From assembly GCA_009103225.1 (NCBI GenBank), contig RHPI01001946.1:371207-435206 (forward strand): DNA of 64,000 nt. The letters are read 5' to 3'. The translations under genes and the position numbers were made by a program. The notes beneath the pieces are model-generated. The model saw only the letters and a list, made by a program, of their open reading frames with translations. It searched no databases and was not told the origin of the DNA. This document shows positions 10,301-42,300 of the stretch, piece after piece; the first letter of the stretch is position 1, and every line of letters begins with the position of its first letter. The stretch comes from Chlorokybus atmophyticus. Its lineage: Eukaryota; Plantae; Mesostigma and Chlorokybus algae.

Positions 10301-12000
10301 GATATTGGGGATGCGGGAAGGTGGTAATGCAGCTCGAGCAAGACTGGTGACTTGGCTAGTCACCAACCACCTCGCAGCTCCCCTGTTCGCGTTCGGCACC
10401 AAATTGTTTTGGTTGGACGCCTTCCTGCGTTTGCTACGGCAAGCCTATGACGAGGTTGCCTCGACAGCCATTGACACCTTGGAAGGAGCACAAGAGGCCA
10501 TACTGCGGTTGCCAGGGGTGGAAGCAGCGCGGCAACGCAGACGCATCGCAGCTGCTTATGAGCAGCATGTCCACCAGCCAGAGATTTACCTCACTGGGCG
10601 CGAGCAACAACGGTGTTGGAGGTGGGAGTGGTCAATGGCAGGTGGGATGCCTACATGGCAGGGATCGTATGAGTTCCCATCATCACCCACGACATAAGAG
10701 CGCGGCTCCTGCGCGCAGTGTATCTCCAACCAATGCCTCAGAATCGCCGCTGGAGTGACGTAGTCAACAACCCAACAGCCACATGGGAAGGTACACTAGT
10801 CAGGGAGGCAGCTCATGCAGTACGCTGGACTTATGTGGAAGCACAGGTTGCACGGGAGGCGGGCCCATAAACACCCGGTCCTCCAGGGTTTCTACACTAG
10901 CCATTGGCTACGCCGCCAGGAATGACCCCGGCCACACATAGGTGCAATCCCCCCGCGCCGCAACCAGGGCAGCCACAGGCAGCACCGCCAGCACCCAGGC
11001 CACATCGTGTTTATCAACAGCCAAGACAAAGACGGTTTGGGCCAGGCCGCGGTCAACAAGGCGCTGGAGACCCAGCTGGTCGAGGGGCGCTTGCCGCACT
11101 GCGCTCGACACCACCGGAGGAGACTGCAGCAGCAGACACCCCACGCACACGCTACCGACGATTCAAGCGGTTGCGCATCCACGCCAACGCAGGCATAATC
11201 GCCAATTAAGGCAAGCATGTCACTATTGATGGATGAGCACCCAAGCGTGTAATGCTGGACTTTGGAGCCCAGCCTGTCATCATCAGACATTACCTCGCAC
11301 GCGACCTTGGCATCACTAGCGCTGAGCTGATGCCGTGCTCGTATGTACTCGACACCGCAACCGGCAGGCGTGACAAGGTAATTGGCATCACCAAGCAAGC
11401 GCTCTGCATTCGCTTGACAGGAGTGGACCCGTCCCACAGCACCGAGGTCATATAGAAGTGTGTGGTTACCGATGCAGGATCCTTCGACCATATATTGGGA
11501 CAGGACTTCAGCTTCCCTTTTGGCATGGGGCTGGACTGCTGGACAAAGAAGGCTTGGTTCGTCCTCATTGGGATGAGGAGGACGGAGAGGTTCAAGGATA
11601 TCTGCCTCTCGAGCTGGTGGCTCGCGCTCGTTCCCATTGGAAGTCAGCTGCAACAGCCACCTACAGGTCGTTGTCGGCAACCACTAACAGGTCAGCAGCG
11701 ACAGCCACAGGTCGGGTTCAACAACCACTGACAGATCATCTGCGGTGGTCACCCACAACTCGGACCAAGACTCTCCATCCCATACAACGAGTCTCAAAAA
11801 GATGCCACTAAAGAAGTGGCCCACCGGAAACCAGCGGAACGCCGCTTGCGCGCACAGGTGGTCGCACATCTACTACTGACCAGATCACGGCTCACTTCAC
11901 GGTTCCCTCTCCACAAGGAACAAGCCGCGGTCCAAGAACAACATCAGGTGGCCACTGGAGTAGTAGAGTCTCACGTATTCCGTTGCCAGCAAGGCATCAC

Positions 12001-12231
12001 TGTATGGAACTATTTGGAGGAATGGGTAGTGGCCTCGCCGCTGTCCTCAACACCGGTGCAATGGTCACCAAGTACTTCTACTGTGAACCGGATCCACACG
12101 CACAGATTGCCCTGGGCCACCACCTGCGCCACCTATACAAATGCTACCCGCAGCGACTGCCGCTATTGGCACTGCAAGGCACTTTGAAGGCACTGCCACA
12201 TGACATCCGCTTAATCACTGCGGATCACCTC
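12001..12231 (+). pseudogene. C5 cytosine DNA methyltransferase, N-terminal part (motifs I-III), inside retroelement pol
   Basis: ELFGGMGSG (motif I FxGxG), YCEPD (motif II), HDIRLI (motif III); collinear with the fuller copy at 33750-34170. Confidence 0.8.
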
Positions 12232-12400
12232 AAGGGGGTGGGGATGACAGTGCACCCCGACAAGTGCACCTTTTTCACTCGCAAGGTACCCTACCTAGGG
12301 CACATGATTATGCCCCACGGTGTTGCCAACATTCGCCAGATGCACCAAGAAGCATGCACCTCTTGTCAAGCCCCCCCATCCCCCCCCCCCCCCCCCCCCC

Positions 12401-13424: not shown

Positions 13425-14220
13425 TATTACGTGCTGCACGCTTGCCTTTGTCGGGTCGAGGAGAGTCGAGGGTCACGTTGTCTCATGCAGCTAGCAGGAA
13501 ACACATGATTGCTGAACATGCCACTTTGGCATGCTATAGCACGCCTGGTGGTGTTAACAAAAGCAAAAAGATAACCCACCTCTTATATCAGTAGGTGCTT
13601 TTTGGAGCACGTCCGCCGATGTGGAGTGGTGCGAACATGTGGAGAGAATCCCCTGCCGTAGTATACATGCTGTGCCATGGGACACACAGTTAACAAGCCA
13701 CGCCCCCTGAGCCTCTGGGGAGGTTCCAGCTGTAGAGCTCAATGTCAGCGTGAGTGTAAAGGGCGGTCGATGCGGCAGTTATTACACCAGTACTCCTCCA
13801 TGGGTACCGCGTCCAGTGTGGGCGTTAGACAGTAGCTATGCAGGCCTTTGTTGCAGCCATTGCAGAGCATCATGAGCGAATCGCCGTCGGCGCTGCCGCA
13901 GCGCTCGCAACGCGTGCTGCGGGCGGGGCAAGGTTGTTTGATGCACCGAAACCCTACTACGTAAGGAATGCGACACGGCGCGCAGTTCACCATGTTGTCC
14001 TTCAACCCCTCGCCGTCCCAGCCGAGGAGGTCCACTACCCCTGTGGGGTACACCTTAAGCACCTTGTAGACTGTGCGGCCAGCGGAGGTGTCAAGCGCGT
14101 CTTTAGTGGCCTCCATATGGTGGGCAAAGTCTTCTGCTTGAAACCGGCGCTGGCGCTCCTTGTAGAAACCACTGCGCACGCGCTCATGGCGTAGCGGGTC
14201 GCGGTGCTGCGTAATGCGCT
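13425..14220 (-). mobile_element. Family B-related element, copy C: 3' end (integrase C-terminus, PHD finger, repeat X)
   Basis: ORF 13745-14179 has CERCGSADGDSLMMLCNGCNKGLHSYCLTPTLDAVPMEEYWCNNC (C4HC3 PHD), homologous to 38000-38370; gtggcttgttaact at 13701-13688 starts X; the gagacaacgtgaccctcgac motif matches the X end. Confidence 0.8.
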
Positions 14221-15942
14221 AGTTGTTGAGTGTCATAAGGATTGTGCGCTCAAATAGTGCTGCGCGCGTGATAATGTCGTGGTGCATCAAGTTGGGGTCG
14301 TTGGGGTTGTTCACCATGCGATCCACTAGGCTGGTGCAGACAGCCGTGGTGGATGGCATCAACATTCAGCCGGAGGAGTTCAAAACCATGCAAGAGGTGT
14401 TGTGTGAACACTGTGTGCTGGCGAAGCAACGAAAACTCCCATTCCCAGCACCACAGAGTGTGACAACCAAGCCTCTGCGACTGGTACACTCTGATGTATG
14501 CAGACCACTGCCTGTTGCAACTACTGAAGGGTACATGTATTTTTGGGCATTCTTTGATGACTACAGCAAGGTTGCGGTGGTGGTGCCCCTGCATTTGAAG
14601 TCAAAAGTGTCGGCACGGATGAACAAGATACTCACTCCAATGGAGAAGCAACTAAGAGAGAAGGTGGTGACAGTGCGGTTACACAGAGATGGAGAACACA
14701 TCATCAAGAAGCTGAAGACCTGGTTAGCTGAACACGGGATCATGCACCAATTCACGGCACCCTACACCCCGCATTAAAACGATGCAGTTGAGAGGCTGAA
14801 CAGAACCCTGTCGGAGAAAGTTAGAGCAATGTTGGTAGACGCAAAAATGCAAGACCATAGGTGGGGAGATGCACTGCTTGCTGTAGCGTATGTGCGCAAT
14901 TGCTCACCGAAAGCATCTCAAGCAAAGACACCGTGGGAGCTTTTCACCAAGCAAAGGCCAGACATCCTTATAATGTTGAAGGTTTTCGGCTCTACATCGT
15001 ATGTTTCTCATTCCCAAGCAACTGCAAAAGAAGCTTGCGCCCAAGAAGCAAGAAGGGCGTGTTCATTGGCTATGAGTTCAATATTAAAGGCCTACCGCGT
15101 GCGCTGCTGAAAGACCACAAGGTGGTGGCGAGTAGGGATGTGATGTTTGTGGAGTAAGGCATCACAAGTGCTGTCTTAGAGGTTGTTGTTGTTGAGTATA
15201 TTAAGGAGTGACGTTCAGTCAGCTTGACCTCGACAGGCAAAGGCATCAAGTGCTAAAATGTGGTTAAGTGTAACAGTCAAGGCCAAATTCTGTGATTTTC
15301 ATGGCCGTTTTAGGCCTTATTTGTAAGGTACATGTTTTTAATGACTTGTGGCGGATATCGGCGAGTTATGAGTCTGCCGCGGATATCGACCGGGGCCCCA
15401 AGACCAGTCCGGAAGGTGCCAGAAAACGGAGGGCCAGTCGAGAAGGGCTCGACCAGATTTCTGGAAGGGCCTGGCGCCAAGTAGTATAACTTGACCATAT
15501 GAGCAGCAAATTAGGAGATCTTTGGTGCGTTGGAAAGGTCTAGAAGTGTACTACAAGATTCTGCAAGAATATCTTAGCTTCTAGTTCCGTCTAGCGCTAG
15601 AATCGTCTAGACAGTAGCATGTGCAGACTGGTAGGTATAAAAGTGACATTCTACAACTTGCAATACAACCTTTAGCTCCCTAGTTTCTGGTGTGCAAGCT
15701 TGGTGGTGGTTAGCAGGGGTTGCTAGCGTGTGGCCACCGGTGTGTGCTTGCTTGTGTGACGATCCAAGGCGCTACACAAGTCGGTGTGTAGCTTCGAGCG
15801 CATGCGCGTGCGTACGCGAGTGGCGGGGCGCGCGTGTGTGCTTGGCAGAGGGGGCAAGGTTCCGGTGTGAATACCGTGTCTTGGTGAGAGGGTTGTGGAT
15901 TGGACCAACTCACAGGTGACAAGGCACGAGCACCGTCACAAC

Positions 15943-15954: not shown

Positions 15955-15983
15955 ACGGTTTACGAAGGTGAGAGAGGAAGTGT

Positions 15984-23600: not shown

Positions 23601-26600
23601 CGATAATCAGCTGCAGGACAGTCTGTGGAGTGAAGCTATTCTCACCGCCAATTACATACGCAATTGGTCACCTGTGAGTTCTGAGCAGAAGACACCGTGA
23701 GAGCTCTTCTATGGCTCTGCACCAGATGTGAGTGGCATGCGTGTGTTCGGGTGCATCGCATATGCACCGGTGCCCAAGCAACTCAGGCACAAGTTGGAGC
23801 CAGTTAGCAAGAAGGGAGTCTTCGTCGGCTATGCAGCTGGTTCCAAGGCGTACTAGATCCTGCTAGAGCAAGAGAAAAAGGTTATTGCAAGCAGAGAGGT
23901 GGTGTTTCATGTGGGTTCATCACAATTGAAAGCTGACTTCTACCCTAAGGACAACAACGCGCGGGCGCAAGAGTTTTCTGAGGTTGAGGTTGAGGAGACA
24001 AAGGGCGCGGCAGTCATCCTGGATGAGCACGACTTGACTGAGGCTAGCAATGTGGAGCAACATCAGCACCAGTCAACTTGCAGGTGTCCTGAGAGGGAGA
24101 GAAGCGCACCTAACTTTTATAAGGCACACGTGGCGAGTGTGCGAAAGGATAAGGAGGAGCCAAGCACCCATGTGGAGGCGCTGCGCGCACCTGACGCGGA
24201 GCAGTGGCAACGGGCTATGGACGAGGAGATTGCGTCACTTTACGCCAATAATACATGAATGCTGGTTAAGGTGCCTGAAGGTGCCAAGCCCATTCCTGTC
24301 AAGTTGGTCTTTAAGGTGAAGCGTGATGGTCGAGGCAACATTGAGCGGTACAAAGCAAGGCTGGTGGCAAAGGGCTTCCTGCAACGAAATAGCGTTGACT
24401 TTATAAAAGTTTTTGCTCCCGCAAGTAAGCATGTCACCTTTCATGCATTGTTGGCTATGGTTGCTGCTGAGGACCTGAAGATGCATCACTTCGACATGAA
24501 GACTGCCTTCCTTTATGAAGAGTTAGAGGAAGAGATCTACATTGAACAACCACCTGAATATGAAGAAGGAGAGCGCGGTGTGGCCTGCAAGCTGATCAAG
24601 GCATTATATTGGCTACGGCAAGCACCTCGTATGTGGCACATTCGGCTTACAATGGAGTTGGAGTCGTTGGGCTTTAAGGCATCAACTGCTGACCTTGGGC
24701 TCTTCTTCCACGAGGCAAAGAAGGTGTGGTTGTTAATGTATGTGGACGATATTATCGTTATCGCAAGGCAAGCGAAGTTCGTGCACGAGACCAAGCTTGC
24801 ATTGCAGCAAGCATTCTCGATGCGTGATCTTGGAGAGGCCAAGTTCTTTTTTGGCATGGTGGTTGAGCGCAATAGAGCGACGCGCACTATTCAGATCAGC
24901 TAGGAGCAGATGGTAAAGAGACTGGTTGCCAAGTTTGTATTAACTGAGGCAAAGACCAAGTCTACACCACTGGCGGTCGGTACCAACCTCGTCAAGGCGA
25001 AGGAGGGAGAGGTACTTAACAAGGCTCAATACCCTTTCGGTCAACTGGTAGGCAGCATGCTTCATCTGGCAGTGTGCACGCCTCTAAACATTGCACATGC
25101 TGTTGGAGTCCTTGCTCGCTACATGTTTGCACCGTCCATTGAGCACTGGAGGGCTGCAAAGGGGGTACTACGCTATGTGGCGGGAAGCGCTTTTATTGGC
25201 ATCAAGTTTGGTCGTGGCGACACTGAGCTGATAGGCTATTGCAACTCGGACTTTGCTGGAGACCTCGACAGCAGAAGGTCTACTACTGGCTATGTGTTCA
25301 TACTCAACAGAGGAGTTGTGAGCTGGAACATGAGGCTGCATGCAATTACAGCGGCATCCACATTTGCAGCGGAGTACATGGCGGCAGTGGCAGCGATGAA
25401 GGAAGCATTATGGCTTCGCAAGCTAATGGCGGATCTTTGAAGCATCCCATGGATTGCATAACATTCAAGTGGCGACAATCAAGGCGCCATCCAATTGCTG
25501 AAGCACCCAATCGCTTCTTCACGCATAAAGCACATTGACGTCATGCATCGTTTTCTGTGAGACAAAGTCATGAGAAAGGAGGTTGTCTTCTCGTATTGCA
25601 AGACTGAAGACATGCTCGCGGCCTTCATGACGAAGGCACTATCACCAATGAAGTTCAAGGCATGCTGTGTTGGTCTTGGCATTTGTGTTTGGGTAGGAGC
25701 TTGGGTCAAGCTGCTTGTGTGGGAGTATTAAAGAGTGACGTCCAGTTAGCTCGACCTCGATAGACAAAGGCATCGAGTGCTAATAGTTGGTTAAGTCCTT
25801 GTGCACGTTGTAGTTGCAATAAGAGGACTCATACCGAGCAGTTGTGAGTCTATAGCTCGATATTTGCATAGTCTAATTAAGGACGCTTGAAGACCCGAAC
25901 CTGGAGCTCAACAACAGTCTGGTGAACAATTCAGAGCTCCGGTGGATGTAGTGGAACTTTCTGACTACTTAGTTGCTAGAGATGTGACATAGCTTGTTGG
26001 AAAGCTCTCAAAGTTAGCTACGCGGTGCAACTTAGAGCGTCCAATATACACGCGTGTAGAAGGAATAGTTGTTGCTATTGGCTCAACACTTTGGCGGCTG
26101 GTGTGTTGTGCATGTCGTGCTTGGCCCTGCTGCATGTATGCAATAGCTTCCGAACAATAGAGGAGGAGGAGGACCCAATATGGAGGAGTCACCAATCAAC
26201 AACATTCCACACCCTCAGAATACAGATACTTGCCATCAGTCTCAGCAGCAAGCATTGGAGGACGAAGCTGTGGAGGTCCAGTAGGAGCCCAGGTACATGC
26301 TGAGGAGCATGAGACCGGAGGAAGGACGCTTCATAATCTTGGCAACATTAACCAAAGAAAAGGAGCCTACCACAAATGAGGAGGCAATGACAGCCCTGGA
26401 CACGGAGCTGTGGCAGCATGCAATGGACGAGGAAATAGCATCCTTGCACGCCAATGGCACATGCAGGCTAGAGAAGGTCCCACCTGAAGCGAAGCCCTTA
26501 CCGGTGAAGTGGGTGTACAATATCAAGCACAATGGGCAAGGCCGCATTGAGAGATGAAAGGCACGGTTGGTAGTGAAGGGTGTCATGCCAACTACCCTCG

Positions 26601-28860
26601 CATGCCAGTCCTCCTCGAGCATGCCTACATCCAGCTCCAAGCCCGAACTGCCAGCATGAAGACCGCACGCGCCCCAGCCTACTCCTAGCTACTGCAAACT
26701 TCATATAGCTAGGGCTACTCTACAGACCTCGCTGTAGGAACCGCGCGTAGCTGATCAGTTATGAATCTGTTATGAGCTCATGTGCTATAACGAATCTTAG
26801 AGGATTGCCGTAGTAGCATACGGCCTCAATGTGACCGTTGGCCTAGTGCGCGCTTGGCACTGCATAGTCATGATTGTACATGTATAACTAGGAAGTCATG
26901 TCACTAGACTCAATGGTGACACTGTGAGTGAGTACCGAGAGTAGAGACTCTTAATTTAAGAGCTTGTGAAGTGACTTGAATTGAAAGCGCACCGTTCCGG
27001 TTGCCAAGAATTGCCGTACTACGTGAGACATAGTGTATGCTCTTGTGCGATGTGCTTGTCATTGCTGTGAGCTTAATGGTGGTGTGTTTGCTGTATCAGT
27101 TGGGACATAGCATCTTTGAGTTGCTTAATTATTCACCTCACTTAACAATGTAACACACCATCCACTCATACAACGAATTGTGTAAATCACTATTATCGTA
27201 GTGGCTGTTCACTCACAGTGTCACCCTCTTTGCTCAAGTGAGTGCGTAGCATTTTGCGTCAGGTAGTGCAGTCTGTATCTGAAGATACATTTTTGTGCAT
27301 TCATTATCATTGGCATCACATAGTGCGCACACAAGCGCTAGTTTGGTAAGTGGTAGCAGCATAAAGATAAACAGTAGAGCACAAACACTCTACCCTGCAT
27401 ACACTTTCACCTATGAACTAGTTGTATGTAGGCCCACCTCCAATACACGAGGGTGACCTCAGCAGCTGGAGCCCAACCTCCAATCTCACCTACGAGCGGA
27501 CCCGCGACGGGAGCAATAATCGCAGCAAACTCTCGCATTTTGTCTCCGGCTTCATCCGCTTCGGTCTACTCCTCGCCATCGAGCTTTCCCACTATTGTCC
27601 GACAGCGACAACTACGAGATGGAGTCTTTAAGTTCAACCACATCTCTGCACTTCTCCGGACCTGTCATCACTACCGCATTGGACGAATTCAACATCACCT
27701 TTCATTCCAAGACGCGACAGCAAGTTCTGAAGAACAAAGATTGGTCAAATGAAAATTTTCCACATTGCTGCTCAATATGTGGAGCAGCAATAAAGCACAC
27801 AATGTCTGAAAGTCTGTTGCTAAATTGCATCGAGTTCATGGCTATGGCGAGCTCGCCAACACCATAGCATCTGCATCACTGCCCGTACGGCAGCCGTCGC
27901 TTCACCCGCCATTCCAGTTGCAGACGCCGGCTTGTCCATAGCTGCAGCCATTGAGCGGGCAGAGGAGGAGGAGCCTGAGTCGCTGATTCCACCAAACCCG
28001 TGCAGAGATTGAGACCAAGATGGTCGCACGACGGGCCCGGATCCTGGACCGTTCTGCAACTATCCTTAAGAACAACGAGCTGCAACCGCTAAGGTGGGCA
28101 CACCTCTGGTAATACCTGGCTTTCGTACAAGGAGCAGTGCTTTCACCCTCGGGTCAGTCGCACTGCGCGCAATATGAGTTCATGAAGCGCACGAAATGCG
28201 CGCCCATGAACTCAAGAACTCGTTAATCAGTTATGAGACTCTTGTGCCCCTAGTGCCTTGGGCACTTGGGGGCACAAGCACTCACCACATGTGAGTTGTG
28301 AGTCACAAGCTCCTTATCTGGTCGCTTGAAACCCTAGCGCGGCGGCGCCATCCTTGGCGAGGGTGGCGAGTGTGGTTAGGAGGAAGAATAGGCGGTCGAC
28401 CTCCATGATCACCATACGGTCAAAAGGTGCCCGTGGCGATGGAGAGGACGTGGAAGCCACGGCCAAGGCGGCTAGGCTTGCCGCCAATAGGCTGGCGCGG
28501 GCTACAAGTCGGCGTCGCCACACCTTGAGTGAGGAGGAGGAGAGAAGAGCGGCGAGTGAGGAGAGACGGGTGCGCCCCCCCCCCCCCCCCCCCCCCCCNC
28601 CCGTGGAGGTGGGAGAAGAGGAGGTGAACAAGGAGGGTGACGATGATGAGGACGAGGATGATGAGGACCCGCCCGTCGTCACTTACAAGCGTAAAAAGAG
28701 GGAGGCAAGCCCGCTCTCCAACACTTCCACCCCGTCCATGACACCCACGGGGGCCATGGCGAGGAGGTTGGAGGAGTTGGAGGCGAAAAACATGCGTCTT
28801 AGGCATGGGAAGGCGCCCGTCATCCCTCATGATGAGCCCATCGATGAGCCCAACCACCCG

Positions 28861-29757
28861 CTACTCAGCCTTCACGGCTTGGGTCGCAGCTCCCGAACGA
28901 GCACAGTGTGTGCCAAAACGCGTGGGGTCCTCCCCTGCCGCCTTAATGGCTGCCTTCTCCCAACCAAGGATAGTGCCGTATGGCACCACAGTGTTGCGTA
29001 TGACACACGTTCCCCCGGCTCGGATAATGGAGCGCAGCAACTTGCCTGGTCCCGCGTGCCGATATCCCGAGGCAAATAACAACTTCTCGGTGTGCATCAC
29101 CGGGCATAAGTCACCGCCCACAGCAGCTATGTGCACTGTGGCGCCCACACCATGTTGCTCGGTTTTGTTGCGCGGGATGACGAGATCTATACGGCCTGGG
29201 CGAAAAACAATGTTCTGCGCGTTTACCTCCGCCAGGTCAGAATATCGCATCATACCCGCAAATCTCAGCAGCACCGTCACTGTTTGCAACATGGCCACCA
29301 AGTCCCACCCGTCGCGAGCAAAGTGCGACACCATGGCTCGCAAGAGCTCAGGCGTGTAGGCGTCCTTCTGCCGTGTGTTCAAGGGCAGCAGCCTGGCAGC
29401 GGCCTTACGAACCACCGCAACGAGTGCATGCGCAGTGGGAGAGGCCTGGCCTGCCATGGCATGCGCAGCATGTATGGCCGAAGAGGCAAATTTCACAGGT
29501 GCCGGGGTGGTTGAATCCACCAACATCTTGGTCAAGAACAGGTCCACTGTGCCAGGGTCTGCTGGCCGGGCAGCCCAACCACAAGGCGTGCAGAACTCCA
29601 CAAAGCGACGCCAGTAGCCCTCATAGCCCCGCAGGGTGCTAGTAGCACGTGACGCCGCTGCCACTGCTGGGTATAAGGTGCGCAGGCGCTCAATCTCGTA
29701 GTCTCCGGGGACGTTGGGCATGAGCGACTGTACGCTTCGCTCAATAGTATACAGCAT
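28861..29757 (-). pseudogene. Inverted, C-terminally truncated tyrosine recombinase copy
   Basis: ORF nearly identical to 29892-30968 (RYSDL, HCARSGAAT); lacks the C-terminal catalytic Tyr region. Confidence 0.9.
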
Positions 29758-29891
29758 GTGTCAATGGCCAGAATCAAAGGCCCAGCAGAATCAAAGGCCC
29801 AGAATCAAAGGCCCAGCTTGCTTGTGGCCCAGCCCGCAAGTCACGGAACTTCAAGGGGGCTTGCCCAACAGTCGTATGTGGGCATTGCGAA

Positions 29892-30968
29892 TTGACTTGC
29901 ATTTTGGCCATTGACACATGCTGTACTATTGAGCGAAGCTTACAGTCGCTCATGCCCAACGTCTCCGGAGACTACGAGATAGAGCGCCTGCGCACCTTAT
30001 ACCCAGCAGTGGCAGCGGCGTCACGTGCTACTAGCACCCTGCGGGGCTATGAGGGCTACTGGCGTCGCTTTGTGGAGTTCTGCACGCCTTGTGGTTGGGT
30101 TGCCCTGCCAGCAGACCCTGGCACAGTGGCCCTGTTCTTGACCAAGATGTTGGCGGATTCAACCACCCCGGCACCTGTAAAACATGCCTCTTCGGCCATA
30201 CATGCTGCGCATGCCATGGCAGGCCAGGCCTCTCCCATTGCGCATGCACTCGTTGCGGTGGTTCGTAAGGCCGCTGCCAGGCTGCTGCCCTTGAACACAC
30301 GAAAGAAGGACGCCTACACGCCTGAGCTCTTGCGAGCCATGGTGTCGCACTTTGCTCGCGATGGGTGGGACTTGGTGGCCAGGTTGCAAACAGTGACGGT
30401 GCTGCTGAGATTTGCGGTTATGATGCGGTATTTTGCCCTGGCGGAGGTAAACGCGCAGGACATTGTTTTTCGCCCAGGCCGTATGGATCTCGTCATCCCG
30501 CGCAACAATACCGAGCAACATGGTGTGGGCGCCATAGTGCACATAGCTGCTGTGGGCGGTGACTTATGCCCGGTGATGCACACCGAGAAGTTGTTATTTG
30601 CCTCGGGATATCGGCACGCGGGACCAGGCAAGTTGCTGCGCTCCATTATCCAAGCCGGGGGAACGTGTGTCATACGCAACACTGTGGTGCCATACGGCAC
30701 TATTCTTGGTTGGGAGAAGGCACCCATTAAGGCGGCAGGGGAGGACCCCACGCGTTTTGGCACACACTGTGCTCGTTCGGGAGCTGCGACCCAAGCCGTG
30801 AAGGCTGGTGTGCCCCAACACCTGTGGCAGCAGTTTGGACGTTGGAAGTCTGCCACTGCAGCTGGGGGCTATGTGCGCGCAGCGTTGCCTGAGTTGCACA
30901 CACTTACGAGGAGCCTTGGCTTGGGTGGCACGTGCTCTTGCTGTTTTTATCCATCTATCGACCCATAG
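29892..30968 (+). CDS. DIRS tyrosine recombinase (phage-integrase fold)
   Basis: 358 aa; MRYFAL (RYSDL equivalent), HCARSGAAT, GRWKSATAAGGY. Confidence 0.85.
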   Translation: MTCILAIDTCCTIERSLQSLMPNVSGDYEIERLRTLYPAVAAASRATSTLRGYEGYWRRFVEFCTPCGWVALPADPGTVALFLTKMLADSTTPAPVKHASSAIHAAHAMAGQASPIAHALVAVVRKAAARLLPLNTRKKDAYTPELLRAMVSHFARDGWDLVARLQTVTVLLRFAVMMRYFALAEVNAQDIVFRPGRMDLVIPRNNTEQHGVGAIVHIAAVGGDLCPVMHTEKLLFASGYRHAGPGKLLRSIIQAGGTCVIRNTVVPYGTILGWEKAPIKAAGEDPTRFGTHCARSGAATQAVKAGVPQHLWQQFGRWKSATAAGGYVRAALPELHTLTRSLGLGGTCSCCFYPSIDP

Positions 30969-31969
30969 CGACCCCCCTGCGTGAGGTGTGTGTCGCATAT
31001 AACTTGTGTGTGAGTTATATGAGTTCATAAGCGCATGAAATGCGCGCCCATGAACTCAAGCATTCGTCAATGAGTTATGAGACTCTTGTGCCCCTAGTGC
31101 CTTGGGCACTTGGGGGCACAAGAACTCACCAGACGTGAGTTGTGAGTCACAAGCTCCTTATCTAGTCGCTTGAAACCCTAGCGCGGCGGCGCCATCCTTA
31201 GCGAGGGTGGCGAGTGTGGTATACTTTGCAGGCGTACAGGCTTCTCAAGCTTCAACCTCAATGTCGGCAGCACTGACGCCATCCACGAGTCGAAGACCGA
31301 CGAAGCGCGTGACTTTCGCACCTGGCGTGAAGAAGTAGTTCTTGTAGTTGTAGCCTAGCGCCCTAGTGCAAACTTGTGTATGAATCAGCCTAAATCTGTA
31401 CACTTGTACATTTGTATTGTAATGCACTTGGGTGCTGGGCATAGCCACCGTGCTATCGACCCATAGCGACCCCCCAGTATGAGCTGTTTGTCGCATATAA
31501 CTCGTGTGTAAGTTGGCAGGGACGCGAGCAAACTCATGATGCTTTATCCAGTCGTGAACAAGGTCCTCCTCTGTGCTAGTGTAGGATACTGCACACGACT
31601 ACAAAGTGATCTCAACAACGGAGCTTAGCCAGAGCTTTAATGGCATGATGAGCGTAAAATGGCCACAACTTGTGCAAACAGTGTCCGCATTGGGTCCTGT
31701 TTTGCTCGGCACAACGCCATCCACCTCATTGTAATAGTCATAACATGTCGATCCATTCGAGGGGGTTCTGAGGACCCCAGCAAAAGTTACAAGCAAAATA
31801 GCGATTTTGTAAATAATGGATCACAAATCCAACACTTTCATTCATCCAGCTCGCAATTTGATTCACTAAAGCAGCAGCTGCAAACACAGAAGAGTGCCCC
31901 ACCCGGCTATAACATCAACAGTGCAAGTGTACAGCTACTAGGCTGTCATAACAGCTACAGAGCTGCGCT

Positions 31970-33693
31970 ACCAAATCAGTGGCCGCCACGCCCTGCTGAG
32001 GGCTTACGGCAATAGGCACGCAAGTGCCCTGTCTCCCCACAGTTGTAACGCGTGCGGACATCGCGCTGGCCCCCCGTAGATGCGGCCTGAGACTGCATAG
32101 GCGCGGTCTTGTTACTGGTACGCCCCGCACCAGATGCATAAGATCCAGAGTAGCGGGGGGGGNTGGCCTCGCCCTTTGTTGGGAGTGTAGGCCGCCTTCG
32201 CCTTAGGCTTGGGCTGCGCCGCAGCTGCCTCCTTGATTGCCTTCTTAAGGCGCTTTGCCTCTGCATCGTCCGTAGCTAGAGGGTCTCTCGTGAGCTCCTC
32301 CATCACTTTCCAATTATGCTTGTTGGCCACTTCCACATGGTGGAACTGCGTGCACACCTCGTCCAATGCTGGTGCACAGAGCACTTGTGAGCAACACTGG
32401 TTGCGGCCATTCATGCATAGGCTCAGAGCCATTGGGTTTAACGCCAGGCGCATCCGCATTGACATCACCATCTCCCACATGCAAATGTAATGGCAAACCT
32501 GTTGTGCCTTTTACCTTGCTATGAAGTAGTCATAATGTGAATACAGAGGTGGACATGCAAGGGTATTAAGTGCGGGCCCTCCCCCCCTACCAGACACGGG
32601 GGGAGGAGGGATGCGGAACAATGTATGTATATAGATGCCTCTACGTAGATGACAAGCCCGCACCTTCATAAGGCCGATGATGCACGCATGTGCATGTTCA
32701 CATGAGTAAAGTCCGCACCCTCATGCGTGTCCTACATGTGTGCTTGTGCAAATGGCCATGCTCAATAAAGAATGAGCCCACCTTTCATGTTGTCTTTGCG
32801 GCCTTTGGCGAAATGGGGATCCTCGGCGAGGTGAGAGGGCACACGGTCGATGGAGGCCGCCGCCGAGGTGATGTAAGCCGCCACGTCGATGTGTTGCCGA
32901 GCCCGCTTTTTCATGTTCTCCTTCCAAGGGACTGCGGGATCGCTAAAGCGAATGGCCAATGCCTCCGCACGAGCATTCATTGTGGTGGAGTCGCCTTTGT
33001 CGCGGCGAAAGATGCTCATGAGTAGCGGGTGGTTGGGCTCATTGTTGGGCTCATCATGAGAGATGACGGGCGCCTTCCCACGCCTAAGACGCATGTTTTC
33101 CGCCTCCAACTCCTCCAACCTCCTCGCCATGGCCTCCGTGGGTGTCATGGACGGGGTGGAAGTGTTGGAGAGCGGGCTTGCCTCCCTCTACGCTTGTAAG
33201 TGACGACGGGCGAGTCCTCATCATCCTCGTCCTCATCATCGTCCTCATCACCCTCTTTGTTCACCTCCTCTTCTCCCACCTCCACGGGGGGGCGCACTGT
33301 CTCTCCATATCGCCGCTCTTCTCTCCTCCTCCTCACTCAAGGTGTGGCGATGCGGACTTGTAGCCCGCGCCAGCCTATTGGCGGCAAGCCTAGCCGCCTT
33401 GGCCGTGGCTTCCACGTTCTCTCCATTGCCACTGGCACGTTTTGACCGTGTGGTGGTCATGGAGGTTGACCGCCTATCCTTCCTCCTAACCACACTCGCC
33501 ACCCTTGCCAAGGATGGCGCTGCCGCGCTAGGGTTTCAAGCGACTAGATAAGGAGCTTGTGACTCACAACTCACATCTGGTGAGTGCTTGTGCCCCCAAG
33601 TGCCCAAGGCACTAGGGGCACAAGAGTCTCATAACTCATTAACGAGTTCGTGAGTTCATGGGCGCGCGTTTCATGCGCTTCATGAACACATAT
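31970..33693 (-). mobile_element. 5' part of a second DIRS copy in inverted orientation (repeat A, ORF1, gag-like ORF2 with CCHC)
   Basis: Reverse complement of atatg(t/a)gttcatgaagcg ends at 33693; ARRLEELEAENMRLRRGK; DEVCTQFHHVEVANKHNWKVMEEL; YNCGETGHLRAYC. Confidence 0.85.
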
Positions 33694-33749
33694 TACAGTA
33701 GTGGAGTTCCACGTGTTTCGCCGACAACAAGGCATCATCGTGTTGAAAA

Positions 33750-34170
33750 CTGTTTAGAGGTACAGGTAGTGGCCTCGCCGCTGTCCTTGACACCGGCACA
33801 ATGGTCACCAAGTATCTCTATTGTAACCCTGATCCACTCGCACAAGTGGCCCTGAGCCACTACTTGCGCCGCCTATACAAGTGCTACCCGCAGCAGCTAC
33901 CACTATCAGCACTGCAAGGCTGCCTGAAGGCACTGCCACATGACATCCGCTTAATCACTGCGGATCACCTCGTAGCTGTGGGCAACATCGACTTGCTGAT
34001 AGCAGGATGGGAGTGTCAAAGACACTCCAGAGCAGGCAGAGGCCAAAGACTCTCCAATCCTCGCTCGCAACCATTCTTGGAGTTAATGCGCGTCATAAAA
34101 CTCCTGCAAAGCAACCAGATTTTTAGGCCCCTGGGGTACATTATCAAGAATGTGCACTCACAGGACAATA
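33750..34170 (+). pseudogene. C5 cytosine DNA methyltransferase domain (motifs I-VI) in family B pol, upstream of RT
   Basis: LFRGTGSG (I), YCNPD (II), HDIRLI (III), IDLLIAGWECQRHSRAG (IV, catalytic Cys kept), GQRLSNPRSQPFLE (V), YIIKNV (VI, ENV-like). Confidence 0.85.
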
Positions 34171-36689
34171 AGCGTCATCACGTGGCCAGCAGCTCTGACA
34201 GATGTCCTCCTTGCTGGACAAACCTCTCAATATCAGTGCAGCGCGTCATGGGTCCCGTGCTCATTGCGTTCACGCCAAATGGACAGCCTAACGGGGGGTG
34301 GAGGATCTCTTTGCTGCTGAGCATCTGCATAATAGTCGTCCACGCAATCGCACCGTCGACGCCATCTTTGACCTTGGGCGCACAGCACAACCAGTCATGC
34401 AACACGATCACCAGCACTTCTACTAGTGCAACCAGCCTGGTTAACCGCGCCGTGCGCTTTTAACTCTGGTGTCTTGCCCAGGTTCATACGCCTTTCGCGA
34501 TCAAGGCGACGGTATGGAGGAACCCAATGCTCATGAGTGCGAACGCGCTATGAGATTTTGTTCCAGAAGTAATACAGGTTCCATGCTGACCGATAGTCAA
34601 TAGTGTTAGTTGTTGGGGTGCGCCATGGACCAGAACAGCATAGTGTGGTTGTTAAGAAGGTGCTTTGCTCCAAGACTACCATGTGCCCTTCCAAGAGCTC
34701 AAACATTTGGTCGGGGGGTGGGCTGATCGCGTTTGAGAAAGCGGCACACACTGCCCTCGAGATCGCTCACATGGAGGAGCAGGCAGCATTGTGGAGGACA
34801 TCTTAATGGTCCCATGCCATTGGACCGCTAGCTACAGGCCAGACGCGAGAACAACTCGAGGCTCTCCTCAACAAGTGGAGAAGCCAGTTTAGCTTCAGCG
34901 TGAAAGGGCTAGGCAGCTGCTCACTTTACTGGATGGACATTAAGGTGGTGGACACCGAACCGGTGTTCTTATGATAGCACAGACTAATCAAGTTTGAAGA
35001 AGACTTGGTGGAGCAGAGGTGCAAGGCTCTATTTAATGCGGGCCAAGCGAGGAGTCCACATCGGACTTACGGTCGCGACCATCATGCCCCTGAAACGATA
35101 TTTAGCAGTCAACTGGACAGACCGACATATGTGCGGTAACTTCCGCCCCCTCAACAACAAGCCCAAGCAAGACAGGTATCCAATGCCTATTGCGGAAGGT
35201 ATCTGTAATGAAATAGAAGACTATATAGTCTTCTTTGAAGTATAGGATACTGGCGGTATCTTGGACATGCGCCGAGCGTACAACCAAATCGCCATAAAGG
35301 TGGAGGACAAGCACAAGACCTTTTTCAAAGGCAACCGGCAGCTGTAGCAGTGAAAGGTCATGCCGTTCGAACTGAAATATGCCAAATTTCATCGCGTTAT
35401 GGACAAAGCCCTCAAGAGATTGAATTTTGCACGCTGCTACATTGATGACATCTTCATCTTTGGTTGCAGCAATTAGCAGCATCTCAGGCACATTGAGGAG
35501 GTGCTGCAGACACTGAAGAAAGTAGGGATAACAGTGCACCCCGACAAGTGCACCTTCTTTACCCACAAGGTACCTTACCTAAGGCACATGATTGTGCCCC
35601 ACGGCGTGTATGTACAATAGGCCCAGGTGGAGGCACTGGTGGCCATCCCTGCCCCTACAGATCTTATGCGATTGCGTGTTGTCCTCGGCAATGCCAACCA
35701 CTAAAGACGTCTCGTCAAGGACTTTGCGAAGATCGCGCGGCCACTCACCGAGCTGCTAAAGGAAGGCACGAAGTCCTGTGGAAAGAGGCACAATAAGGGG
35801 CCTTCGAGAAGCTGAAGCTACGACTCACCCTAGCGACCAGACTACAGCAGGTTATTCATCCTGCACACAGATTGGAGCACGCTCGGCATGAGAGTAGTGC
35901 TCGTGCAGCACGATGAGAACAAGAAAGAGCGCGTAGTGTCGTATGCCAACCGCAGCAACAACAGCGCTAAGGCTAACTATGGTAGCTATAAGGGGGAGCA
36001 TCTCGCTGCAGTATGGGCCATCTCCTTCTTCCGCCCCTTTGTGTTTGGTCAGCAGTTTCAACTGATCATCAACCACCATCCATGGACGTGGCTGATGACC
36101 AAACAGCATCTTGCAGGCAAGCTGGCATGGTGGGCACTATTGCTGCAGAAGAATGATTTTGAGGTGGAGCATCGGGCAGGCTTGTCCAATCAACACGCAG
36201 ACGGCTTTAGTCGCAACCCCCGCCTCAGCATCAACAATGCAACAGGAGCCCGACACGAGTTGGGTCCTGCAGTCGCACCTAAAAGTGTGTGTGTGTGTGT
36301 GTGTGTGTGTAGCGGCCATGTTCGCTATTGCTGCACTACATCCAGGACAAAAGACCTAGGCCACTGAGGCAGCAGCAGACGAGGACATGCCTTCTTTCGG
36401 GCCCACTATCATCGTTACCGTTATCGACCCATTACCTGAGGAAGCGCTCGCCACCGACCCTGAGGTGGACGCTGAGGAGTTGGCACCCACCGATACACAA
36501 CAGAATATCTGGCTTGACAAGCCATCCCTCGCATTGCTCCGGACTGGACAATTTCCAGCAGGCATGAGTGCGCGAGAAGGATTGCATCGGTTGACGCACT
36601 CAACGCTATCGCTGGGCCGACGACAAGCTATATCAACAGATACAAAATGATGACTCGGAGGTCTCAACGCCCGTTGCGCGAGAAGGCAC

Positions 36690-37124
36690 TATTGAAGGTT
36701 AAGCATATGAGGTTTGCTAGTATAGTGTGCTTATAGTACATGTTGAAGGTTAAGCATATGAGGGTTGCTAGTATAGTATGCTCATAGTACAACTTGACGA
36801 TGTTACTTAAACCATGTGCGGCGGTTGCGCAATAGGAGTTACAGTTAACAGGAGTTACAGGAGATACGAGAATTACGGTAAATTTTGACCATTGACTAGG
36901 GTTGACTAGGGTTGACTTTAACCATTGACTATTGTTGACTAGAGTTGACTTTGACTAGGGTTGACTAGACTTTTCTAGTGTTGACTAGCTCAGTATATGA
37001 GTCACTGTATGTGGCGCATATAGGTGGAACTGCAATTGTTGTTGACATGCTATTGCACTTGTTGTTCCCGTAGTGTGAGCGCATGTATGAGGTAGGGCGC
37101 ATACATGCACACTACTTCTTAACA
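36690..37124 (+). mobile_element. Copia solo LTR (family R1) in family B pol, TSD GGCAC
   Basis: ggcac|tattgaaggttaag...cttaaca|ggcac; same family as the LTRs at 51381-51791 and 53155-53617. Confidence 0.9.
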
Positions 37125-38442
37125 GGCACCATTGCTGCATTTTGCAGCGAGCTCGGACACTGTAGTGTCGAGCGCACGATCAGTCTGCTCAGGACTCAGT
37201 ATTTGTGGTATAAGGTACACAAACAGGTGCGCGAGTTTGTTAGCAACTATCAATAGTGTGACAAAGTCCGCGCGGGCCTCTACACGCGCACCACCACTTT
37301 GGACCCCCTCCGCATTCCGGGACGGATCTATTGCTGGGGATTAAACATTCTCTGGGACATATTGCCCTCAGCACGAGGCAATACTTACATCCTCGTCATG
37401 ATTGAGCACTTCTTTGAGTGGGTGGAGCTGGTGCCCCTGCCCGACAAGAGCAGCAAGGGAGTAGCCTAGGCTTTCCTCTCCTATATACTTGAACGCTTCG
37501 GCAGCTGTACTGAAGTCATTACCAACGAAGGTACGGAGTTCAGGGGAGCCTTCGGCAAGCTCAGGGACAGATGGTTCATCGACCATCGCTGTACTTCACG
37601 CGACCATCCACAAGCCAATGGTCTTGCTGAGCGTACCGTGCAGACCATAAAGGAGGCCTTGCGCAAGTATGTCCTCGACTACGTGAAGAGCACATGGGAT
37701 GACCACCTCCTGGGTAGCACTGGGGTACCCGCTGATCGATCAAACAGCACTGCGGGTGTACAGCCCATACTATTTGTTGTTTGAAAAGCAACCATTACTC
37801 CCTTTCCGCGCACAGCAGGAGGTCGACAGAAATGATGGACAATCTCGACAACCCCGGCGAGATGTATTGTATAATCTGACGGTGCGCAGCGTGCTGCTTG
37901 AGCACATTGTCCCCATGGCCTTCCACACCTTGCGCATCGCTCAGCACCGCGACACGCTTCGCTACGAGCGTGTGCGCAACGGTTTTTAATAGGAGCGAAA
38001 ACGCCGCTTTCAGCCATGAGACTTCGTCTACCGCATGGCGCCCACAAACAACACCCTTGACACCTGCGTCTGGCGCATTGTCTATAAGATATTGAAGGTG
38101 TATCTCACAGGGGTACTGAACCTCCTAAGACAACAAGGCGAGCGCATGAAGGACAACATGGGGAATTGCAAGCCCTGTCATCTTCCCCACGTAGTTGGCT
38201 TTGGCAAGATCCAGCACCCGCGACCGCTGCGAAGAACCCGCTGCGAGAAATGTGGCAGTGCCGATAATGACCATGTGATGTGAAGGCTGCAATCAAGGCA
38301 TGCACTGTTACTGCCTTGACCCTGCGTTGGGCAAGGTGCCGTTGTGGGAGTATTGGTGCGATGACTACCGCATCGACGGTCCCCCACACAGTTGGTAGAA
38401 GCTGAGTACCAGAGCAGGAGGCTACCTCAGAAGCTCAGGGCG

Positions 38443-38666
38443 GTGGCTTGTCAACTGTGTGTACTATAGCACAGTAGGTACAGTAAGGAGGAGAGCGTCA
38501 CCAGCTCTACCACATATCACATCCGCATAGGTTGAGCCTATGTCGGGGGGGGTAACTTCATATATGGTGCTCTGATGCTGCATTTAGCACCAGCATGCCC
38601 ACGGCATGGGCGCTCGGCTGTAGTGTGCCCGAGACGGCGTGACCCTCGACCGTGGCAAGCACGACA
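38443..38666 (+). repeat. Repeat X1 of copy B (second copy X2 at 39294-39543)
   Basis: Both start gtggcttgt(c/t)(a/g)act, share caggtacag..gagagcgt.accagctcta and end gtgaccctcgacc.tgg.a.gcacgaca. Confidence 0.85.
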
Positions 38667-38668
38667 GC

Positions 38669-39307
38669 TATCATGCCAACTACCCTCACTTGGTAGTCCT
38701 GCTCGAGCATGCCTACATCTAGCCACAAGCCCAAACCGCCAGCATGAAGACCGCGCGCGCCCCAGCCTACTGCTAGCTACTTCTTACTTCATGTAGCATG
38801 TAGCATGTAGGGCTACTCTTCAGACCACTGTAGGAACCGCGCATAGCTAATCAAGAATCTATTTCAAGCTCATGTACTATGTCGAGTCTTTAAGGATTTT
38901 CGGAGTAGCATACGGCCTCGATGTGACCGTTAGCCTAGTGCCTGCGTGACATTGCACAGTCATATGTTGACACGTATAAGTAGGAAGTCATGTCGCTAGA
39001 CTCGCTGGTGACACAGTGAGTGAGTACTATGAGTAGAGACTTTGACGTTAAAAACTTGTGAAGCGACTCAAACTGGAAGCACACCGTCCCCATTACCAAG
39101 AACTGCCTTAATGTGTGAGACATAGTGTATGCTCTCGTACGCTGTGCTTGTCATTGCTATGAGCTTAGCGGTGGTGTGTTTGCTACATCTGCTAGGATAT
39201 AGCATATTTGAGTTGCATAATCATTCATCTCACTTCATAGTGTAACACATCATCCACTCATGCAAAACTTTGTATACAGCACTACCTATTGTTGTGGCTT
39301 GTTGACT
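38669..39307 (+). repeat. Repeat A2 of copy B
   Basis: Collinear with A1 (26581-27213) over its full length, roughly 75-80% alike by eye. Confidence 0.85.
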
Positions 39308-42300
39308 GTGTATACTACATCACAGCAGGTACAGTCCGGGGGAGAGCGTTACCAGCTCTACAACTGATTAGATCCTCACATAGGTTCATCCCGAGTGTAT
39401 GCCTATTTTAGGGGGGTTGGGGGGTGGGGGGTGTTTAATTGTGTTGCTCTGATGCTGCGTTGAGCACCAGCATGCCCACGGCATGGGCGCTCGTTTGCAG
39501 TGTGCCCGAGACGGCGTGACCCTCGACCATGGTAGGCACGACAAGGGGTAATTACAGGAAGAGGGCATCGACTTCAATGAGGTGTTCACCCCTGCTAGTA
39601 AGCTTGTAACCTCTCGCACCATGTTTGCACTTGTGGTAGCTGAGGGTCGGGAGCTACACCACTTGGATGTGAACACTGTATTCCTTCACGCAGAATTTGG
39701 AGAACAATGTGCAGTAACCCAAGGGCTATGAGGAGGGAGGACCAAGCATTGCTTGTTGACTTGTGAAGGCCTTTCACCGGCTCAAGCAAGCGTTAAGAGT
39801 ATGGCACATCCGGCTCCATTGAGGAGTTGGAGAAGATTAGCTTTACACCTTCTGAAGCTGATCCTAGAATCTGCACGCACAAGGAGAAGAAGATCTTGCT
39901 TTTGGTCTACGTCGACAACATCATGGCTGCTGCGAAGAAGCTGAAGTACTTGGAGGAGGTGACGACATTGCTCAAGTCTGCCTTTGACATAAGGGACTTG
40001 GGAGAGGCAAGTCTGTGTTCTAAGCATGGTAATCGAAAGGGACAACAAAACAGCTAAGATTAGCTAGGAGTTGATGGCGCGAAGGATTCTGCAGAAATTT
40101 GCAATGGGAGACGACCAAGGGCAAGGTAATACCCATGTGCGTGAGCCAAGCTGTAGCGAGTAATGAGTGAGACAGCACCTCGACAGGAGCAAGTTCCCTT
40201 AGAGTGAGTGAATTGGGAGCATGCTTTACATGTTCGTGAGCACTAGGCCAGAAAATTGCACATGATGTGAGAGTGCTTGCACGCTACATATCAGCACCCA
40301 CCATGGAGCATTTGAGAGCTGCAAAAGAGTTGCTGCGTAGTATGATGGGGAGCACAAGCGTGTGGGCATTCACTTGAGAGAGGGAGCTGGTGCTGTAGAC
40401 AAGAAGTTCAAGGGCTATTGTGATGCTGACTACGCTGGGGACCTCGACACGAGGAGGTCAACTACGGGCTATGTGAACTTGATCAATGGTGGGATTGTTA
40501 GCTGGAGTAAGCTGCAACCTACCGTGGCTGACTAAAAAGCAGAGGCGGAGTACATGGCGGCCTCATCCGCAGTGATGGAGGCATTGAGGTTGAAGAAGCT
40601 GATGGTGGACTTAGGCTACCCTGTAAGTTGCATCAGCATCAATTGCGACAATCAAAGCGCAACCAAGGTATTAAAGCATTCGGTTGCATTGACCCGATCA
40701 AAGCACATTTACTGTGAATCACCACTTCATGCGCGAGAGTGTGGCAAGGAAGGAGGTAGCATTCGGGTACAATAACACGGAGGAGATGGTGGCTAATTGC
40801 ATGACCAAGCCTTTTGCACTGATGAAGTTCCATGACTGCACTGGAGAATTTCGAGTCTACTAAGCTGCCTGCGTGGGAGTGTTGGCATGAGCATATCTTG
40901 CACACTATTTAGTCCAGTTAGCTTGTAAATTGGCTAAGGCATGAGCCTTCACAATACTGCTACTAGTATGAGCTGATATCGATCAATCATGAGTCTGCAG
41001 CAGATATCAAGTCCACTACGCGAAGCATGAGCAAGCAAGAGACTCCGGACTTGCTCACGAGGTTGGCGCAGCCTGACGCAGCCAACGCCTTGGAAGATTG
41101 GCGAAAACTCCGCGTATACCAAGCCATAGAAGGCGTGGCTTACCTTGTTGGAAAACTTTGGTTGCAAGCTATACAGCTAAGCTTACATATTAGCAATCGG
41201 CTCAACATAGCTGACACGGTGCTTGCTAAAGTAGACATGTATAGTCTGATTGGTATAAAGGCCAACGAAACCAACAAGTTGCTGGTTCGGGTTCGGGTGA
41301 AACCCCTTTGCAAGCCTTGTGTGCATGCCTTGTGTGTATGTTCTGGTGCATGTGTATGCTCTTTGGCCAGTGCTAGCTCAGTGTTCAACACGCTGAGGCA
41401 GCAGATGCTGGGCTATATGTCGGTGCAGGTGCTATAGTGGTGGCAAGCTCGCCATAGCCAGCAACTATGTGCAGCTCAGCAATGGACTTCCACACATCGT
41501 GTGCCTCATGTCATGCGCAAGCATGTAGTGTCATGTGCATGGTGCCCTCGGGGCTAGCGGCATGGGTGGACCTTATGATTTCGGCTCTCATAGCCATTTA
41601 CAGGGTTTATATGTTGGGTTTTCGTGGAGACTTATGCTTGGGTTCTCATAAATGTGAGGGAGGTGTATTCAAGGCGTTTATTCAGGCAAATACTGAGCTG
41701 GCAGCATATTTGAGTCATTATGGTATCCTGCGTGACTGTTTTGGAGTCGTGACTTTGTGAAGCCATAACTTACAATTGGAGTGGCGATTTAGCCGTGGGT
41801 TGGCGTAAAAGAATGTGTCTTAATGTGTACGTAAAAAGGACGATCTTGGATAAGCCTTTCTTAACCGTAAAATGTTACACATTTATGCCATCATGATTGT
41901 AATTATGCTGGTGCAGACTAACCATTGAGGTAGTTGGAGAGTCGGTTGCTTTTTGGCTTAATGGTGATGTATAAGGCTTTGCTAGCTTGTTTCCTATTTT
42001 AGTTGGATGCAAGTTGGCCTACCGGAGTGCAAGCAACACCTTTAAAAAGAGGTTCGTGGCTGAGCGGATGCTTGTGCACATGCTTGCATGAATGGTATGT
42101 GTGCACATGTTCGTTGCTGTGCATTGCTGTGCATGAAGGGGTGTGTGTCGCTGTGGCGACATTAACGCACCGTATGGGCTGCCTTGACATGTAGTTAAGT
42201 GAGGATTGAGTTTGGATTACATTACACGTGTGAATGGCTCAATGCAGATCAAGTTGTGGTGACCTTGCCTATTATTTGCCCTTGCAAAGGGGACACGCAC

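Follow-up and report, generated by a model that had tools for sequence, protein, structure and literature searches.

A decayed Ty3/Gypsy-type retrotransposon with split terminal repeats in Chlorokybus atmophyticus, and its probable integration through joined cDNA ends

In a window of 64,000 nucleotides from the alga Chlorokybus atmophyticus (assembly GCA_009103225.1, contig RHPI01001946.1, positions 371,207 to 435,206 of the forward strand; positions below are counted from the first letter of this window), we find at 26581-39543 a single old, broken retrotransposon of the Ty3/Gypsy type with the order A1-body-X1-GC-A2-X2. Two equal long terminal repeats (LTRs) bounding the element, as is usual for Ty3/Gypsy, are not present here; the 5' end consists of A only, while the 3' end reads X-GC-A-X. 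We consider it probable, without being sure of it, that this is an ancient insertion of a green-lineage Ty3/Gypsy clade whose normal form is A-body-X-GC-A-X, and that it integrated by way of joined complementary DNA (cDNA) ends cut at a palindrome; the mechanism of integration is one that we infer throughout from sequence. The preliminary description of this DNA knew of no account of the layout for a Gypsy element; one is in print, as the legend of Fig. 4c in de Mendoza et al. 2018 (PMC5890265) already states that KnitGypsy-Dnmt3 of Klebsormidium nitens has Gypsy domains together with the repeat structure of a DIRS element. That report concerns one species and does not give the junction sequence, the target duplication, the mapping of primer and polypurine sites or a mechanism. 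Our full-text literature searches returned no other description of the layout and no mechanism for it.

The target site shows where the element begins and ends. A 4-bp duplication, AGGG, brackets the entire composite within the reading frame of a Copia reverse transcriptase (RT) gene (...KARLVVKG on the left, LQEEGIDFNEVF... on the right), and the translation of the right flank, LQEEGIDFNEVFTPA..., matches positions 45-100 of RVT_2 (E=1.7e-9). The duplication thus flanks the start of A and the end of X, which are the integrated ends as originally proposed, and no matching target duplication flanks A1...X1 by itself or A2-X2 by itself. The two A repeats are 80% identical by BLAST and 82.5% identical in a MAFFT alignment, with a Kimura two-parameter (K2P) distance of 0.203, and the two X repeats are 76-82% identical with a K2P distance of 0.212; the spacer between X1 and A2 is the dinucleotide GC at 38667-38668. 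As the K2P distance is about the same for both kinds of repeat, one insertion event gave rise to both pairs, long ago. After insertion the copy would have decayed (about 20% divergence), lost the C-terminal part of gag and the protease, and received two nested elements. Repeat finding and BLAST recovered A1, X1, the GC, A2, X2, the inverted ends and a 14-nt motif discussed below exactly where the preliminary description had placed them, and domain and homology matches bore out its assignment of a Gypsy-type DDE integrase followed by a PHD finger.

The same layout recurs in relatives. To find these, proteins were searched exhaustively with the window element's RNase H piece as the query, and a word-based search with a full-length match followed. 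These searches gave RT-RNase H-integrase-PHD polyproteins and polyproteins bearing a cytosine DNA methyltransferase (DNMT), and six genomic loci were informative (Table 1). With the window included, the GC spacer is invariant in all seven junctions (seven loci, five genera), and the CA and TG on its two sides are reported as likewise invariant. Counting the window copies as well, the 5' ends read flank, A, primer site in 7/7 cases, and the 3' ends read X-GC-A-X in seven of eight, one of which (L008) has X2 cut short before the flank. Each of the four complete copies has a 4-bp target duplication (AGGG, TCTT, GTCA, AGTG), and ordinary LTRs with A and X together at both ends were seen in none of the copies examined, that is, the six loci plus the window copies. 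A phylogeny of RT-RNase H-integrase, along the lines that had been suggested as a check, puts all the layout loci and the window piece in one clade (SH-like approximate likelihood ratio test, SH-aLRT, 99), apart from the chromoviruses, among them the one in this window; the 177-aa RNase H piece of the window, which fills only 18% of the alignment columns, falls within a 14-row clade of K. nitens, Calypogeia, Marchantia and Closterium sequences. Members of the clade have a PHD finger after the integrase and many have a DNMT before the RT, and the relatives carry RVT_1, RT_RNaseH, Integrase_H2C2 and rve.

Several further loci were left out of these counts. Four of them (L001-L004), short contigs from metagenome and Logan data, end at or before the repeats and are uninformative on the ends. 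A fifth, a Klebsormidium locus (L005, P0193) lying at a contig start, has no polypurine tract or junction after its integrase and was taken as truncated. At L011, the locus of P0235, which is a sister of the clade and has a PHD finger, A/X repeats of at least 50 nt were not found. About 450 nt past the P0235 open reading frame (ORF), at 11580-11610, this locus has GCACGACA-GC-TGTAG; we regard this as a lead only, from which the palindromic junction may predate the clade examined here. We also noted that the Klebsormidium locus L006 has an unusually long body of 12.9 kb (1019-13916), in which two ORFs of 836 and 494 aa, together over 1,300 aa and with no Pfam match, lie between the gag zinc knuckle and the RT.

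The priming signals indicate how the repeats relate to reverse transcription. In all seven 5' ends the site at the end of A is a perfect complement, over 12-19 nt, of a stretch inside A, and for each of them none of 200 shuffles matched; the pairing is kept although the sequences vary by genus, which is co-variation across seven copies. This matches the self-priming arrangement of the Tf1 type, and by it the start of the transcript is predicted to lie inside A. Judging from the overlap of the self-complementary stretch with the end of A, the primer would be 11-15 nt long. On the other side of the body, a G-rich tract, AGGGGGG(N)G, stands immediately 5' of X in the relatives at all loci. From the places of these two signals it follows that reverse transcription makes an LTR of the form X-GC-A, and a linear cDNA with the order X-A-body-X-A is expected. 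The suggestion of the preliminary description that X plus A forms the true LTR therefore stands, since the tract directly precedes X and the self-complementary site directly follows A in every copy examined. At the A/X joint of the integrated copies, the base that precedes the primer is fused to the one that follows the polypurine tract, so that the joint unites the right tip of the cDNA with the left tip.

The chromosomal ends, TGTCA... at the start of A and ...CGACA at the end of X, lie head to head inside every LTR with GC between them, forming the palindrome CA-GC-TG. The intact end-GC-start junction first noticed in the window is thus a conserved feature across seven loci and five genera. 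In the window itself the letters at 38660-38675 are CACGACA-GC-TATCATG, and if the TGT present in A1 and in copy B1 (a related element upstream in the window) is used, the ancestral junction, GACAGCTGTC, is a 10-bp palindrome. The junction 12-mer also has an exact match at 54448-54459, which was rejected as chance, as 0.76 matches are expected and neither A nor X is nearby. The 14-mer GTGGCTTGTYRACT ends A and begins X, with matches at 6709, 13688 (minus strand), 38443 and 39294 compared with 0.12 expected by chance; the A1 version, at 27201-27213, has a 1-nt deletion. This 14-nt redundancy between the end of A and the start of X is kept once where A2 meets X2, and it is specific to the family of the Chlorokybus window. 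In the copies from Klebsormidium, Marchantia, Calypogeia and Closterium, A and X meet bluntly and overlap by 0-1 nt.

Because the ends used for integration lie inside the LTRs of reverse transcription, the chromosomal copy is circularly permuted with respect to the expected cDNA, as if opened at the palindrome in the 5' LTR, and this permuted form requires that a head-to-tail A/X joint exist before the palindrome is cut. It can be envisioned that the cDNA termini are joined first, either in a 2-LTR circle or in a tandem LTR produced by a further template switch. In the window family this joining would be guided by the 14-nt terminal redundancy, through annealing or through a strand jump during synthesis, of the kind by which hepadnaviruses circularise, and in the other genera the termini would be joined bluntly. 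The integrase would then cut behind CA on each strand of the palindrome in the 5' LTR, leaving recessed CA-3'OH ends and GC 5' overhangs, and the permuted molecule with its recessed CA ends, the standard substrate for strand transfer, would be inserted. Cutting after CA on both strands would also explain why the GC is absent from the outer ends. The 4-bp target duplications, together with chromosomal ends of the form TGTCA.../...CGACA, are marks of a DDE integrase. An A/X joint cut at the internal X/A site is the simplest route to the order A-int-X-A-X, and to this extent the earlier proposal of a circle opened at the internal X/A junction holds in outline; the step in which the 14-mer mediates circularisation applies only to the window family.

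Several points weigh against this integration route. The alternative product A-X-A-body-X, which the preliminary description had expected from opening at the other junction and had connected with copy C, a further fragment in the window, is seen in none of the seven 5' ends, while a symmetric circle predicts about half (binomial p about 0.008, with the loci taken as independent); the intermediate must therefore be asymmetric, which the model does not explain. An integrase able to cut internal palindromes should also cut both of those in linear cDNA, giving A-body-X. That they stay uncut might be due to a flap over the polypurine-proximal site, or to cutting that is coupled to synthesis, both of which are guesses. 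Moreover, as the 14-nt redundancy is confined to the window family, two different routes of joining have to be assumed. The sample consists of seven loci selected through protein matches, and the evidence is chromosomal sequence only. A broader claim would be that, in an entire clade with DDE integrases, which includes elements of streptophyte algae and liverworts and probably of other groups, integration always waits for the joining of the cDNA ends, that the integrase opens the joined form at a CA-GC-TG palindrome built into the LTR, and that a directional rule always yields A-body-X-A-X; on this we are evenly divided.

It is also conceivable, though we hold it to be unlikely, that reverse transcription directly makes a linear A-body-X-A-X, through unrecognised primers or from a read-through RNA containing X2, and that its ordinary termini are integrated. 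The strict one-way permutation of all seven 5' ends fits such deterministic synthesis better than the random opening of a circle, and a transcript that began at the start site in A1 and extended through X2 would miss only the 5' part of A. However, the conserved G-rich polypurine tract precedes X and not A, the conserved, putatively self-priming site follows A and not X, and the sequence that does precede A, namely the end of X, is not purine-rich. We found no scheme of template switches by which X would come to lie right of the primer site for the minus strand. Schemes drawn up on paper with a second plus-strand primer, the G-run in X, priming from an RNA 3' end or a rolling 1-LTR circle were rejected because none fits the conserved positions of primer site and polypurine tract; the G-run inside X is absent from Klebsormidium.

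Production of the layout by a tyrosine recombinase, as in PAT, Ngaro and DIRS elements, acting either from the element inside the interval or in trans, is very improbable. The order A...B-A-B is the classical layout of DIRS and PAT elements (PMC5890265), and an ORF of the Phage_integrase type does lie inside the interval. That ORF, however, is part of another, self-contained element, which has a further copy at 43577-49159 and interrupts gag, while the nearly intact Calypogeia locus L009, with three long ORFs (DNMT; RT-RNase H-integrase; PHD), encodes no tyrosine recombinase, so that such an enzyme is not needed for the layout. All four complete copies show 4-bp target duplications and TG...CA ends, and we know of no tyrosine-recombinase retroelement that makes these. 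Lastly, a one-off composite, in which A2-X2 is a separate mini-element or solo repeat beside A-body-X, or a tandem made by unequal recombination, is scarcely credible: the identity of only about 80% between A1 and A2, the heavily rearranged interior and the single X at the end of copy C would suit it, but the target duplication is shared by the outer ends only, the A and X pairs are equally diverged, and the order with its GC spacer recurs at six loci in four other genera, several of them with 97-100% identical repeats, so that for practical purposes the relatives refute it.

Table 1. Parts of the Chlorokybus element, other elements of the window, and loci of relatives with the same layout (positions of the relatives are those of their own loci)
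Feature	Position	Strand	Remarks
Left target-site duplication AGGG	26577..26580	+	flank reading ...KARLVVK(G) stops at 26580, in Copia RT gene
Repeat A1 (5' terminal repeat)	26581..27213	+	begins TGTCATG; holds inferred transcript start (R-U5)
Inferred transcript 5' end, GGTGACACTGTGAGTGA	26915..26931	+	17-nt perfect complement of primer site; 0/200 shuffles matched
Putative self-priming (Tf1-like) primer-binding site across A1 end	27209..27225	+	likewise in 6 other 5' ends, sequences differ
Leader and N-terminal part of gag, decayed	27226..28170	+	homologous to copy B1 6735-8041
Nested rearranged tyrosine-recombinase (PAT-like DIRS) element, inverted arms	28171..33696	.	Phage_integrase matches; separate copy 43577-49159
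C5 cytosine DNMT domain of pol, decayed	33750..34654	+	PF00145 E=3.3e-5 at 33747-34460
RT and RNase H, decayed	34843..36277	+	RT_RNaseH E=5e-25; RNase H piece 35834-36364 intact
Small nested repeat between RNase H and integrase	36692..37126	+	copies 51381-51793, 53157-53618
DDE integrase (zinc-binding part, catalytic core, C-terminal part)	37131..38262	+	frame breaks
C-terminal PHD finger remnant	38279..38395	+	PHD E=0.0014
Decayed polypurine tract CTCAGGGCG	38434..38442	+	adjoins X1; copy C counterpart CTCAGGGGGCG
Repeat X1	38443..38666	+	first bases are the 14-mer, last are CACGACA
Internal end-GC-start junction	38662..38673	+	CA-GC-TG palindrome with one substitution (TAT for TGT)
Repeat A2	38669..39307	+	begins TATCATG, one substitution vs TGTCATG
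Repeat X2	39294..39543	+	shares one 14-mer copy with A2; CACGACA is the element's 3' terminus
Right target-site duplication AGGG	39544..39547	+	Copia RT frame resumes here
Copy B1, related family	6099..12324	+	flank, A, primer site, gag, protease, DNMT...; stopped by assembly gap
Copy C fragment	13445..14281	-	integrase C-end, PHD, polypurine tract CTCAGGGGGCG, single X ending CCCGACA, unrelated DNA
L006 Klebsormidium	A 360-1018, body, X 13917-14099, GC, A, X to 14937		repeats 97-100%; duplication TCTT; junction CACGGCA-GC-TGCCATG
L009 Calypogeia			complete order; repeats 99-100%; duplication GTCA; junction CACGACA-GC-TGTCAC
L012 Calypogeia			complete order; repeats 97-100%; duplication AGTG; junction CACGACA-GC-TGTCATG
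L008 Closterium			complete order, X2 truncated; repeats 98-100%; duplication not readable; junction CCGACA-GC-TGTCAG
L007 Marchantia			3' end X-GC-A-X and a second element starting flank, A, primer site; X pair 97%; duplication not paired; junction CACGATA-GC-TGTCATG
L010 Klebsormidium			3' end X-GC-A-X; X pair 97%; duplication not paired; junction GTGACA-GC-TGTCATG

The coding content of the window element agrees with its assignment to Ty3/Gypsy (Metaviridae), of which the pol order and the TG...CA ends with a short target duplication are features. The pol order is DNMT, RT, RNase H, integrase, and in B1 the DNMT comes after the protease. The DNMT of the window element has 35% identity to the DNMT part of the relative polyprotein P0029, its RT and RNase H have 41-44% identity to P0029 and P0011, and its integrase has 44-45% identity to the integrases of the same two polyproteins, the Pfam match to rve_3 being weak. 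The decayed RT pieces, the piece of the integrase core at 37257-37466 and the left Copia piece all escaped Pfam, and they were placed by tblastn with the relatives or by reading the frames.

The C-terminal part of gag and the protease are replaced by the PAT-like element at 28171-33696; the corresponding interval of copy B1 holds a protease and a gag-like cysteine/histidine motif, which was read by eye and has no Pfam zf-CCHC match. As an independent copy exists and the place of gag has been taken, the tyrosine recombinase is a passenger that stands outside the Gypsy element. The nested PAT-like pair has 884-nt inverted arms of 97% identity and outer arms of 91-95%, with an end-to-start joint at about 31016, and the separate copy has a 352-aa ORF with a Phage_integrase match (E=5e-7). 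The second nested piece belongs to a repeat family of about 435 bp, with further copies at 54031-54183, 55948-56120 and 43397-43501 and with 74-84% identity between copies; the one inside the Gypsy element opens with a 51-bp tandem duplication (36692-36793).

Two other copies in the window belong with this element. Copy B1 opens at 6099 with TGTCATGCC and has no X upstream. As had been described, its A adjoins the primer site, and copy C, whose PHD finger is intact (E=1.3e-10), has X after the PHD. Recombination between X1 and X2, or an A-body-X product, accounts for the single X of copy C as well as the other opening would, and that opening is not supported. Assembly gaps (N runs) lie at 12380-12640 and 2100-2764. 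Because a gap at 12401-12622, with long G runs on both sides, parts B1 on the plus strand from C on the minus strand, the relation between the two is unreadable. Weak DNMT-like and integrase-like matches to the polyproteins of the clade, at 61503-61796 (plus strand) and 63264-63890 (minus strand), are probably further decayed fragments.

The window provides its own control in a chromovirus at 15267-21317 with the ordinary arrangement: two 674-bp LTRs of 99.7% identity, TG...CA ends, a 5-bp duplication (TTAAG), a primer site starting TGG that adjoins the 5' LTR, and GGGGGGGGAGGAG immediately ahead of the 3' LTR. It looks young and recently active; its pol of 1177 aa (RT, RNase H, integrase, SH3, chromodomain) is intact, and its gag has 359 aa. 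Next to it, direct repeats of about 370 bp (21318-21688 and 25791-26160), 85-92% identical and 4.47 kb apart, enclose a Copia-type RNase H motif at 25369-25433; they probably mark a further old element of the Copia type, lying just upstream of the Copia RT hit by the Gypsy insertion.

Among known systems, KnitGypsy-Dnmt3 is close in kind, having a Gypsy-type pol with a DNMT of the DNMT3 type, where the window element has a C5 DNMT upstream of the RT. The K. nitens loci L006 and L010 share the X-GC-A-X layout and fall in the same clade as the window element, whereas the window copy comes from another genome, is decayed, and has the 14-nt redundancy that the K. nitens copies lack. With ordinary Ty3/Gypsy elements, among them those of the self-priming Tf1/sushi type and the chromoviruses, the window element has in common the order RT, RNase H, DDE integrase, the TG...CA ends, the short target duplication and the G-rich polypurine tract, and, as in Tf1, its primer site is putatively self-priming, but in its clade the order of the repeats around the primer and polypurine sites is a circular permutation of the ordinary one. 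It resembles PAT-like, Ngaro and DIRS elements in the order A1-body-B1-A2-B2 and in an internal B1/A2 junction that equals the joined outer ends. Unlike them, it has no tyrosine recombinase of its own and no DIRS-type RT, and it has a DDE integrase, target duplications and TG/CA ends.

In the textbook account, an LTR retroelement integrates when both tips of a linear cDNA are joined to the target, with 2-LTR circles treated as dead ends. The circle junctions of the IS3, IS30 and IS911 types of bacterial insertion sequence (IS) consist of abutted inverted ends. Going by the titles of reports (PMC1180852, PMC1905944, PMC4372172), the integrases of the retroviruses PFV (prototype foamy virus) and HIV-1 (human immunodeficiency virus type 1) reportedly cut the palindromic LTR-LTR junction of 2-LTR circles. 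By analogy with these, a DDE enzyme in the clade would cut abutted inverted ends a few bp apart and obtain both processed ends from one site. The retroviral case differs in that it is a side reaction at an end-joined junction, whereas the palindrome of the clade is built into every LTR; the spacer of the clade is 2 bp and not 4 bp, and it is the permuted product that appears to be the usual chromosomal form.

The layout has been published for a single species, but not how widely it is spread, which sequence signals go with it or what integration route it implies. The window copy adds one more dated, target-duplicated example and evidence of a family-specific 14-nt terminal redundancy. Software for finding LTRs that expects two equal ones will mis-annotate or miss such elements in algal and bryophyte genomes. 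If the integration route proposed here is true, DDE integrases can take an internal, circle-type junction as a regular substrate, and a pathway like that of the IS circles, or of the Panganiban-Temin type, would be a normal route of integration, with a mechanistic link to the circles of bacterial IS elements. A split-repeat layout like that of DIRS elements could then arise without a tyrosine recombinase.

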